A stretch of DNA of 64,000 nucleotides from Paramoeba atlantica (Eukaryota > Protista > Discosea), in contig CDRNVI010000149.1 in the NCBI GenBank assembly GCA_977017575.1, positions 186,001 through 250,000 on the forward strand. The letters run 5' to 3'. The notes beneath the pieces were generated by a model. The model had not been told where the DNA came from, searched no databases, and saw only the letters and a program-made list of their open reading frames with translations. Below are positions 11,088 to 14,762 of this stretch, in pieces. Within the stretch, counting starts at the first letter, position 1; the number at the start of each line of letters is the position of its first letter. A program made the position numbers and the translations under genes.

Positions 11088-11771
11088 ATGTCTGAACAAA
11101 CTGCTCACTCTGTTCAAACCTGAACTCCTTCTCGAAAACTCCTTGAGGCAGATGAATCTTTCTTTAAAAGAGGAAACTCTGTTCCATATTGCTACATCTC
11201 TCTTGAACCCTCATCACATCAAAGCGTAAACAAACCAAAAACTACAAACCAAAAGAAAAACCAAAAAGAAAAGTGTCCTCCTTGTGCTCTTTCTCTTTTG
11301 GAGAGCAATATTGCAAGCAAGTTTTCATGTGATACAATTGTTGATTCTGTTGTTATTGAGCTTGATCGGATTGCCCATGATCTTTTTTCAAAAATTCCCT
11401 CGACTGCTTGTAGTATGCGAATCTATCGAACAAAGGTCAATGCAGTTCTGTTTGAACTCCTCATCATCCCTCATCTTTTGAGAAGTGGTGGCGACCTTTC
11501 TCCTCGCAAGAAGTCAGCGCCAGTTTTTCTGATCCAATTTTACGAAACAAAAACTTTTGAACAAATTTTTTCAGGACTTGCATCAAAGGGACTCTTCAAC
11601 CCAATGACGAAAAAATTCAAAAATGGTCAAAAGATGTGGATTGTCGCTCATAAAAAGTATCCGGTTGTATGGAGATTTTCTGCAAATCTTGGAACTCTTG
11701 CAGTTCATTTTTTTGTTCAAGGATGGACAAAAGGAGGACTTCCAATCAATGATCTTTATATCTCAAATTAA
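11088..11771 (+). pseudogene. Orphan two-exon gene (~200 aa, ORF X) with one in-frame TGA, function unknown
   Basis: ATG 11088 (MSEQTAHSVQT*TPSRKLLEADESFFKRGNSVPYCYISLEPSSHQS), phase-0 GT-AG intron 11226-11303, then the non-low-complexity ORF to 11771. Confidence 0.5.
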
Positions 11772-14762
11772 TAAATTTATTATTTCTTAAGATTGTGATT
11801 GATTGAAAACGTAATCTTCGTGGTTTTGCTTTCGTTTTTTCCTCTTCTTCCTCTTCTTCCTCCTCCTCTTCTTCTCCCTCTTCTTTGTCATCAAAAGAAA
11901 ATTCATCCTCTTCCTTTTCTTCTTCCTCTTCCTCTTCCTCCAACGAGAATTCATCTACCTCCTCATCCTCAAAGATCTCCTGTTCTAACTCCTCCATAGA
12001 CTCTCCTGTCTCTCCCTCAGGTGGAACTACATAATTCTTTAAAATGAGTTCCCTTGTTGTTTGTGGAACTCTTTTTTCACAAAAATCGATCATCTTCTTT
12101 TCAATCGCTTGACAACTTGGACATACTTTGTTTTCTTCCCCAACATCTTCCACAACACAAAACACAACATTTTCCCTTCTCAACAAAACGATACACGATC
12201 CTTGATATTGTGCCCCCGAACAGATAGTTTCACTGGACAAAGGAGGTGAGCCAAAAATCGAAAATCGTCATATTTTGTGGCTGTCTCATACTTCATTGCG
12301 CCATAGCCACATTTTTTCACAAGTCGCTTTTGAATTAAATTTCGTAACTCTCCGCTTTGGCAACTACTGACAGCTGGTCCAACTCCTATTTGAAAAAGAA
12401 TGAATGAAAGGAGATAATCAATAAAAAAAAAAAAGCAGAGGGGGGGAAAGAAAAGAAAGGAAAGCAAACCATAATTTTCATAGACTTTTTTGTAAAAATA
12501 AGGGCAGTCAAAACAAAGAGTATAAAACCATGTGATAATATTCGAGCTTGGAAATATTAATTTCATAATCTGAATAATTTGCTTTCCTGTTCTCGTCATT
12601 TCATCTAAAAGGTGTTGAACCTCACTTGGTTCCAAATCTTCCCCCTCATTATCAGTGAATTTCAAACATTCCCAAAAAGAGCTCATAAATTTAATTCGCT
12701 GACAAATAAACGAACGAAAAAGCTTGTAACTTCAAATCGAACAAGGGTGGCAACCGGTGGTGAGGAAAACAGGAATAAATCGCTTCAACAACCAACTTGT
12801 GATAATTTTGCAATAGCCTTGTTGCTTGCTCTCCAATCAACCGAAATTTCAGCTTCTTTCCTTCCTCAGTCTCAAGAATGTACTTCCATTCAATCGTCTT
12901 TGCAAAAGAGAGCAATCCAGAAACTCTTTTCATTCGCTCCACCATCTCTTGTAACATCTTTCTCCCAAATTCCTTATTGGAATTTGCAAACTCAACAATA
13001 GTAAGAAATAAGGCCAAAGTTGCAGAGCACTTGCCACTTGCCATGAAGAGGACCATCTGGAGTAAAACGCTCACAAATCGCTAACAAAGGGGCTTCTTTT
13101 TGGCTATAATTCTCTTTCCGAATAAATTGTTGAAGGATCGCATCTCTTGCATTTTCATCTATCGACTTATCTGAAACGATTTCTTGCCATTTCACTCGAA
13201 CTTTTTCCCCCATTTCTTTCATTTTTGCCAATGTTCGCCTTCGTAACTTGTCTCGAGGAATGTCAGCATTGTCACGAGTCACATCAAGCCAATAAACAGA
13301 GAAATAAGTTGCAGAACAACCTTGATGACCAGCCACTTTACTTTGGTAAGAAATGTCAGATCGACTGGATCTCAGGAGAGACGGACAAAACAAAAGCAAA
13401 GCCAAACCAAAGATCAAATCGAAAATGTAGATTTATTCAAGGAAACAAACAAGGTGAACATTTGCTCAAGAGAGAGAAATGTGAGGGCAGTGAAAAGACA
13501 GTTGAGATGTGATCGTGACAAGAATAAAAAGGAACACAAAAACAGCGTTTTTGTGGAAGGAAACAAGGACAAAATCAAATCAGGAAGGGATAAAATAAAC
13601 ATCAGGAAAAATAGGAAAAGGGAAAATAATACAAGGGGAAAAATACAACAGAGAAAGGGAAAAGAGAGAGAGAAAGAGCAGTGATCAATCGGAGGAGCGG
13701 AGCGACAGGATGGCATCAAATTGAATAGAAGACAACCGAACAGGGTTCGTAACAAGAAAGGCCACCAATTGGAAGAAAATGGCAATGGTACAGATTTGTT
13801 TTGGTATTATCGATTTCACATGGAATTGAAACACCATTCTTTTCCACCACTGCAATTCCAGGGTTTAAAACATTCTCACAAAGCCATTTGCTCACTTCAT
13901 CATCTTCTTTGAAATTCCCACCACAGATCCAAGGCATCAATGTTGGTGAACTTCCAACTCCAACAAAGTTCACAAATTGCAAATATGTATTTGTCATACC
14001 CATCTGAAAAATAGATTTTCAATTAAATCTTGTTTTGTTTCTTTTCCTCTATGCTCCCCCTCAAAAAAAAAGAAAATAATTTTTCTACTTACTTGTTTAC
14101 TCTCCGGGGCACCATCAGTGAACATATTCACTAAAATTTGATATTTGCCTTCTTAAAAAAGGTGAGAGATTGTTGAACTTTCGAACATTGGAGCATTGCT
14201 TTCAGTCTTTTCTCAACAACTTCTTCCAACTTTCGATAACCACCTTTAACCCCATACTCAGAAGGGAGTTCATGAAACCTATATGTTTATCTTTTGAGCA
14301 AATTGTTTTCATTGAGGAGGAGAAAAGAAGCTTATTACAAAAAAAAAAAAATTCTTACTTTGCTTCAAGCTCCAATGCGGACAACATTTTCTCCCCAAAA
14401 TCCATCGCAGGCTTTGGAGCAGGAAGTTTTGGAAATGGAATTTCAAACTCTGGTGTTTTCAACTGAATTAGTTAGCTCCCCAGACAAAGGATCTAAGCCT
14501 CACTGAAATATTGATCGCATAATTTGGATTTTTTGGTAACCCATGTCATTCATCATCATGTTCACAAACTGTGCTTGTTTCAAATTGTCAGATTTCTCGA
14601 GGTTTTGAAAGTCTATTTATTAAATTTTGAAGAAATCAGAATCCTTCAAAAACACACACAAAAAAAAAAAATTAACCTTTTTGAACAGCTTTCTTCACAA
14701 CTTGCTTCCCAACGGGCAGACAAATGACTTCTTCAATCAGTCTTTTTTGAAACCTTGGATTA
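11760..14762 (-). pseudogene. RAG1/Transib-like DDE transposase, 5 introns, 5'-truncated, frameshifted
   Basis: Spliced reconstruction gives NMFTDGAPESKQ (D, 14114-14116), PVDLTFLTKVAGHQG.SATYFS (D, 13360-13362), DGPLHGK, KLKFRLIGEQATRLL, and ITWFYTL..CP....YGVGPAVSSCQSGELRN (E, 12348-12350), then a Cys cluster and acidic tail. GT-AG introns at 14676-14613, 14358-14279, 14092-14004, 13765-13371 and 12469-12386 all restore frame. Confidence 0.7.

Follow-up and report, generated by a model that had tools for sequence, protein, structure and literature searches.

A decayed transposase copy of a multi-copy, probably CMCT-clade transposon in Paramoeba atlantica

All lineages of the CACTA/EnSpm-Mirage-Chapaev-Transib (CMCT) clade are said to share C(2)C and H(3-4)H zinc ligands in their transposases, and CAC...GTG termini together with a 3-bp target duplication are hallmarks of EnSpm/CACTA elements (PMC12730594). 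Transib, RAG and RAG-like (RAGL) systems make a 5-bp target duplication (PMC10462144, PMC9435367), and the tails of RAG1L and Transib proteins carry a CX2CX3GHX4C knuckle (PMC10462144). Here, we describe a transposase gene on the minus strand of a 64,000-nucleotide stretch of Paramoeba atlantica DNA (the window), at positions 11790-14759. Very probably, this is a dead copy of the transposase of a cut-and-paste CMCT-clade transposon of about 6 kb that is present in multiple copies in this genome. The element is of a known kind and its family is a divergent variant within the RAG1/Transib-CACTA clade. A first-pass annotation of the locus had called Transib-type transposases mostly described from animals, which is outdated, as Transib-like proteins have been reported in bacteria, fungi and plants and RAGL in a pelagophyte (PMC9435367).

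In ENA assembly ERZ24900291, a word search with the window piece 12995-13354 returned six open reading frame (ORF) fragments at 82-96% identity, and nine further copies were fetched, L001 to L006 via transposase fragments and L010 to L012 via a neighbouring partner gene. Comparison by blastn revealed a repeat unit that spans about 6.05 kb and is bounded by imperfect terminal inverted repeats; L001:6124-12169 is a full copy of it. The window holds the following parts of this unit:

9069-14759, minus strand: 5'-truncated copy of the ~6.05-kb terminal-inverted-repeat DNA transposon (blastn, 91-96% identity to L001, L002, L003, L005 and L006)
9069-9100, plus strand: 3' terminal inverted repeat, read from the outside in as CACCACAGCCGATTTTTGAGAAAAC

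The terminal inverted repeat of the family reads 5'-CACYRCATYTGATTTTT. Copies begin CACYRCA, with the CpG-intact terminus CACCGCA in L003, L010, L011 and L012 and the decayed forms CACCACA and CACTGCA, and every copy has CAC...GTG termini. L001:6124-12169 and L010:5966-12011 are each bordered by AGT/AGT, in flanks that otherwise differ; the flanking 5-mers do not match. As each AGT match has a chance of 1/64, the two matches argue, with moderate confidence, for a target duplication of 3 bp. No duplication was seen at L011 (TTT/GAA; flanks identical to those of L012) or at L001:906-3317 (AAA/TTT). The latter is a 2.4-kb internal-deletion derivative from a related subfamily (78-88% identity) which retains both terminal inverted repeats and is likely a non-autonomous element. 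The 3' flank of the window copy (9040-9068; TTCTTCTTTTTC beside the terminal repeat) is identical to the 3' flanks of L011 and L012; segmental duplication of a larger unit, and not separate insertion, is thus how these three copies spread.

Three-frame translation of 11700-15100 gave about 12 open pieces, with the frame switching repeatedly. In L001, the best copy, a single frame covers 7611-9437 with only two stop codons, which marks the majority of the window's frame changes as lesions and not introns. Window positions 11790-14759 are a pseudogene, the transposase of one decayed, 5'-truncated copy of a multi-copy transposon, and the five-intron gene of the first-pass annotation is not an intact gene but a copy that is dead and truncated. 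The motifs named there (FTDGAP, PDGPLH, FRLIGEQA, SCQSGELRN, YFSVYW and WFYTLCFDC) were all found in the minus-strand translation, where the following stretches mark the reading:

14122-14093, minus strand: FTDGAPESKQ, with the first catalytic Asp
13357-13289, minus strand: ...GHQGCSATYFSVYW
13066-13037, minus strand: FTPDGPLHGK
12849-12826, minus strand: KFRLIGEQ
12530-12495, minus strand: WFYTLCFDCPYF
12368-12339, minus strand: SSCQSGELRN, with the catalytic Glu

PVDLTFL, which had been taken for the second-Asp motif, turned out to be frame 1 of 13371-13282, an out-of-frame reading beside a 396-bp insertion. The true second Asp lies in LPIGD-LSYQSKVAGHQG, which is uninterrupted in L001, L002, L004, L005 and L006. 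The gene is laid out as follows (P0011 and the loci L007 to L009 belong to the distant relatives described below):

14677-14759, minus strand: remnant of exon 1 (...RFQKRLIEEVICLPVGKQVVKKAV.K), start codon missing
14613-14676, minus strand: intron 1, 64 nt, GT..AG; position also interrupted in the distant relative L007
14359-14612, minus strand: exon 2, with a 4-bp insertion at 14475-14472 and an in-frame stop after ...SIFQ
14279-14358, minus strand: intron 2, 80 nt, GTAAGA..ATATAG; exons contiguous in P0011 and L009:547-1419
14093-14278, minus strand: exon 3, with the GGYR motif, the first catalytic Asp and a 2-bp insertion at 14144-14143; F.D.APESK kept in P0011 and L009
14004-14092, minus strand: intron 3, 89 nt, GTAAGT..TTTCAG; P0011 uninterrupted here (...APESKERGMTNAF...)
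13755-14003, minus strand: first part of exon 4 (MGMTNTY...LPIGG), whose last 10 bp are one copy of the target duplication of the insertion
13359-13754, no strand assigned: 396-bp insertion, the fifth "intron" of the first-pass annotation, flanked by a 10-bp duplication
12470-13358, minus strand: second part of exon 4, with D-ISYQSKVAGHQGC (second Asp, HxxC), PDGPLHGKC, FRLIG, LKLQAFSF and TLCFDC (CxxC)
12386-12469, minus strand: intron 4, 84 nt, GT..AG, a multiple of three and stop-free; contiguous in P0011, P0010 and P0016, with L008 interrupted there
11790-12385, minus strand: exon 5, with the catalytic Glu, the C-terminal CxxC...CxxC cluster and an acidic tail; 3' limit approximate

Four of the five GT-AG introns claimed earlier (14676-14613, 14358-14279, 14092-14004 and 12469-12386) are credible and keep their support in related copies, because each either separates exons that run collinearly in intronless relatives or occupies a position that is shared with a distant relative. 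P0011 is a single 657-aa ORF that reads through the positions of introns 2, 3 and 4, and L009 does likewise. The fifth intron is the insertion, absent from five other copies. L009 has an interruption of its own after ...ICERF (L009:1419-1485), a probable lineage-specific intron without counterpart in the window's family.

Compared with L001, the window copy carries extra bases: 4 bp at 14475-14472, 2 bp at 14144-14143, 7 bp at 13043-13037 (a duplicated GGCAAGT), 4 bp at 12718-12715, 1 bp each at 12188 and 12163, both of which break the C-terminal Cys cluster, and 4 bp at 11806-11803. An in-frame stop is present at least once. In blastn, the match with the full copies breaks off within exon 1, at 14759, whereas L001 and L002 extend about 750 bp further; about 640 bp of 5' element sequence are missing from the window copy. 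The 396-bp insertion is flanked by a 10-bp duplication, AAGAAATGTC / AAGAAAGGCC, at 13349-13358 and 13755-13764, and sits at the codon of the second catalytic Asp, which reads Gly at the end of the first part of exon 4. It is absent from L001, L002, L004, L005 and L006 and present only in the window copy and L003. The insertion shows no obvious terminal inverted repeat and has no other full copy in the window or the fetched loci; an internal stretch of about 90 nt weakly matches window 26731-26848 and L009 (72-74% identity). L003, an independent contig from another assembly, is 99.1% identical to the window copy and shows the same lesions, insertion and 5' flank, so the damage is not an assembly artefact. 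None of the copies read in detail (L001 to L006 and the window copy) encodes an intact transposase. Across all copies (L001:6124-9520 equivalents), substitutions relative to the majority consensus comprised 280 G>A, 218 C>T, 41 A>G, 37 T>C and 25 others, about 83% thus being C>T or G>A. Substitution rates were 29-36% at CpG and 4-8% in other contexts, an enrichment of about five-fold. This spectrum fits, and implies, deamination of methylated CpG in the repeats of this genome.

Only ten cluster representatives came out of an exhaustive HMMER search with L001:8517-9230, and six of them are divergent (31-48% identity): P0011 (L007), P0012 and P0009 (L008), P0010 (L009), P0016 and P0014, from three Joint Genome Institute (JGI) metagenome contigs and other sources. 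The gene is not a chance product, because relatives in independent metagenome contigs match at E-values of 1e-16 to 1e-28. Further, a word search with family profile A1 matched only P0011, and a pattern search of JGI metagenomes with alignment A3 gave 269 hits, none of which was confirmed. We aligned the family with MAFFT (alignment A4), using P0011 as scaffold for the ORF pieces and covering five divergent lineages. All motifs are collinear in P0011, P0012, P0010, P0016, P0009 and P0014. From the N-terminus, the conserved blocks are GGYR.L, F.D.APESK (first Asp), MTN..i.F.NF.G.GS.P and LP..DL...S..GHQG (second Asp), followed in the middle by ERF.PD.PLHGKCS, FRLiG, LK..AF.F.C and TPW..TLC.D.P.F. 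The C-terminal part holds VG....SC..GE (Glu) and then CxxC, 10-23 residues and another CxxC. The D, D, E order is thus kept in five lineages as F.D.APESK, LP..DL and SC..GE, with a spacing of D134-D220-E510 in P0011. The separate C-terminal Cys cluster noted earlier is real and conserved, and is broken in the window by the two 1-bp insertions.

Two AlphaFold2 models were built for the intronless relative P0011 with the family alignment, with mean predicted local distance difference test (pLDDT) values of 48.3 and 55.2. Reasonable confidence was reached for the helical region that separates the second Asp from the Glu. Using Foldseek against the PDB, the top 32 matches of model 1 were all RAG1 and the top 38 of model 2 were all RAG1 or HzTransib (best E 3.2e-3). 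VIA-align 2, which is independent of Foldseek and was run against 48,161 representative chains, placed BbRAGL 6b40_E, HzTransib 6pqn_A and RAG1 6dbi_C, 4wwx_E, 6cij_A and 6oem_A at ranks 1-6 for both models. Z values in this order were 10.3, 9.0, 8.4, 8.2, 8.0 and 7.8 for model 1 (best unrelated chain 7.4) and 12.5, 10.0, 9.9, 9.7, 9.5 and 9.1 for model 2 (best unrelated chain 8.1), with alignments to the RAG1/RAGL/Transib chains covering 147-162 residues at a root-mean-square deviation of 3.1-3.7. Residues 262..446 of model 2 were aligned to mouse RAG1 792..957, a span that begins at the PLH motif and ends shortly before the catalytic Glu. Gapless extension of this alignment would put P0011 H324 on RAG1 H795 and E510 on RAG1 E962. 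Judged from these models, a RAG1/RAGL/Transib fold of the domain inserted between the second Asp and the Glu is supported.

Language-model features point in the same direction. In the Atlas, the middle piece was nearest to RAG1_ZnH2/ZnC2 clusters, and the N-terminal half (L009:547-1419) scored 0.97, with 188-192 of 256 features in common with RAG1 pre-RNase_H, RNase_H and ZnC2 clusters; the Transposase_21 cluster appeared only at rank 28. For the RNase-H likeness of the catalytic core, which lies below pLDDT 50 in the models, these features (0.97) are the sole support. A fold search of the Atlas yielded nothing but unnamed eukaryotic clusters, with a best TM of 0.45 and Cnidaria as the most frequent phylum. 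The proposal of a DDE transposase with RAG1/Transib likeness is therefore borne out by the fold of the insertion domain and by language-model features, and not by sequence searches.

The RAG1 CxxC and HxxxxH, which looked absent or rewired to the first-pass annotation, are lacking throughout the five divergent lineages of alignment A4, so that their loss is not peculiar to this decayed copy. In none of these lineages is the second Asp followed by CxxC or the Glu preceded by HxxxxH; GHQG(C/A) and TLCxD(C/A) are found instead. In GHQGC, the His and Cys of an H-x2-C pair lie 10 and 13 residues after the second Asp, while the C-x2-C of TLCxDC lies 27 and 24 residues before the Glu. In RAG1, H937 and H942 lie 25 and 20 residues before E962. 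Both GHQGC and TLCxDC occur in the window's family, L008 and L009, whereas P0011 carries Ala for the second Cys of each motif. This paired Cys-to-Ala change suggests that the two motifs form one site, as far as can be read from four lineages. HxxC and CxxC probably replace the canonical CxxC/HxxxxH zinc ligands in the window's family and two others, judging by motif positions.

Convergent with the transposase lies a second conserved gene, and the following features were recorded here and in the relatives:

11298-11771, plus strand: conserved partner gene, intact 157-aa ORF, tail-to-tail with the transposase
L007:3163-3744, L008:1885-2862 and L009:2876-3982, minus strand: partner gene in the relatives
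L008:4218-4946 and L008:5225-6871: region of the JmjC-like and SET ORFs

The partner has 41% identity (E 8e-28) to the gene beside P0011 in L007 and is also found in L008 and L009. Its ORF is intact in the window copy although the transposase is dead, and it has no Pfam match, including kelch and PHD. In L008, an element from a JGI metagenome, a JmjC-like ORF (22.6 bits, just under the Pfam cut-off) and a SET-domain ORF (26 bits) lie downstream of transposase and partner.

Compared with RAG1, BbRAG1L and HzTransib (PDB 4wwx, 6b40 and 6pqn), the family shares the D, D, E order, a long helical insertion of the same fold between second Asp and Glu (Z 9-12.5), a D-x-(x)-L-H motif and the catalytic Glu in register, and termini starting with CAC. 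It differs in having no detectable sequence similarity, no CxxC or HxxxxH, a 3-bp instead of a 5-bp duplication and a C-terminal CxxC...CxxC cluster instead of a CCGHC knuckle; there is no evidence for a nonamer-binding domain or a nonamer-type sequence, and the partner is not RAG2-like. The family terminus CACCGCA has only CAC in common with the heptamer of recombination signal sequences (CACAGTG / CACAATG). As in ProtoRAG/RAGL two-gene transposons, a second conserved gene lies convergent with the transposase inside the terminal inverted repeats, but this partner is short and without kelch or PHD signal, and target duplication, terminal repeats and zinc features differ. With EnSpm/CACTA and the CMCT clade (PMC12730594) the family shares CAC...GTG termini, the 3-bp duplication, a multi-exon transposase and extra genes in the element, while it lacks C(2)C and H(3-4)H, shows no Transposase_21 (PF02992) or Plavaka match and is hosted by a protist and not by a plant, animal or fungus. 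The fungal TET/JBP-carrying CMCT transposons (ESTA, Plavaka and TET+ EnSpm; PMC12730594) likewise have a RAG1-like transposase seen only at the structure level, and the related locus L008 carries JmjC-like and SET ORFs; here, the host kingdom differs, the duplication is not TA, the zinc motifs are missing and a 157-aa partner stands tail-to-tail. Membership of Transib proper is not supported: the 5-bp duplication, a heptamer match beyond CAC, the C-terminal zinc-knuckle pattern and a match to any sequence model were all not found. Because of its CAC...GTG termini, the 3-bp duplication and the missing CX2CX3GHX4C knuckle, the family is filed as a divergent CMCT lineage; termini and duplication point to this placement and away from Transib proper. 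It appears to stand nearer to CACTA-type transposons than to the ancestral form of the antibody-gene recombinase.

Several results weigh against this reading. Pfam returned no relevant family for ten window pieces, seven pieces from other copies and five distant relatives; the Pfam RAG1 sub-domain models, Transposase_21, Plavaka and KDZ gave no match at E up to 10, and phmmer and hmmsearch runs against PDB sequences with the pieces and profile A1 gave no RAG1 or Transib match (E up to 10). Both AlphaFold2 models are poor (mean pLDDT 48 and 55), and the RNase-H core with both Asp residues stays below 50 in each, so that only the helical domain was fold-tested. No Foldseek E-value reached 1e-3, and in VIA-align 2 helical models can reach Z values of about 13 by a common arrangement. 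To our knowledge, there is no solved CMC structure (EnSpm, Chapaev), and the fold therefore does not tell Transib and EnSpm apart. Of four two-ended copies, only two showed a matching target duplication, and the intron calls rest on collinearity and splice signals.

Three other explanations have to be weighed. The family could be a true deep-branching member of the Transib superfamily or a RAG1L relative and would then bear directly on RAG origins. The only solved structures it resembles are indeed RAGL, Transib and RAG1, Atlas features favour RAG1 sub-domain clusters over Transposase_21 (rank 28), the termini start with CAC and the partner is convergent as in RAGL elements. We nevertheless regard this as decidedly unlikely given the 3-bp instead of 5-bp duplication, a terminus (CACCGCA) sharing only CAC with CACAGTG, the failure of every RAG1 or Transib sequence model to match, the absence of both the C2/H2 ligands and the CX2CX3GHX4C tail (PMC10462144), and a 157-aa partner without kelch or PHD match. 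Even less probable, by a clear step, is that the gene belongs to another DDE superfamily or encodes no transposase, its RAG1 matches reflecting a common helical arrangement in a poor model. Such a view would fit the pLDDT of 48-55, Z values of 8-12.5 that fall within the flagged helical range, Foldseek E-values that never reach 1e-3 and the missing sequence-model matches, yet all six RAG1/RAGL/Transib representatives take ranks 1-6 in two models, two aligners agree, and the alignment is collinear from just past the second Asp to the catalytic Glu. In addition, two separate halves match the corresponding RAG1 sub-domains independently and in the right order, and the gene sits inside a terminal-inverted-repeat element with CAC...GTG ends. 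Finally, several lesions are short indels typical of long-read assemblies, so frame changes could be assembly errors in an intact, expressed five-intron gene. We give this hardly any credence, as L003 (99.1% identical, independent contig, other assembly) has the same lesions, 396-bp insertion and truncation, the insertion has its own 10-bp target duplication and the 5' end of the gene is absent.

A dead transposase copy from a CMCT-clade element thus remains our preferred reading. The intact enzyme would be a DDE nuclease of about 830 aa encoded in five exons, with the first Asp in F-T-D-G-A-P, the second in P-I-G-D and the Glu in S-C-x-x-G-E, and a predicted helical insertion of about 290 residues between second Asp and Glu adopting the fold of the RAG1/RAGL/Transib zinc-binding domain, in which H-x2-C and C-x2-C may replace the zinc ligands. 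By analogy with RAG1 and HzTransib, an active enzyme would free the element after binding and nicking at its CAC...GTG termini, and integration would make a 3-bp target duplication as seen in two copies. The element also carries the conserved tail-to-tail partner gene. The window copy cannot work: its 5' end is missing, the 396-bp insertion splits it at the codon for the second Asp, and it has six frameshifting indels besides at least one stop. It belongs to a family eroded by CpG-biased C-to-T change. Being dead, it adds nothing functional itself; its interest lies in the family it comes from, with the conserved partner gene that this family brings to the picture of the clade. A RAG1-type fold kept without C(2)C and H(3-4)H would mean that the zinc domain can be re-ligated or lost, as opposed to the shared hallmark described for the clade (PMC12730594). 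A further, rather doubtful interpretation is that the family (this genome and at least four metagenome lineages) forms a separate RAG1/Transib-CACTA branch of superfamily rank, its zinc site re-ligated from CxxC and HxxxxH to HxxC and CxxC and with an obligatory small tail-to-tail partner protein. If true, this would be an independent two-component, RAG-like transposase.

Two further repeats were observed in the window. Just past the truncation point, at 15298-15600 on the minus strand, lies an unrelated piggyBac-type fragment (Pfam DDE_Tnp_1_7, E 6.8e-6), with the same flank in L003. Positions 49915-61888 hold a 193-bp satellite in 62 copies of 99% identity, with about 19% G+C and a strong A-over-T skew.

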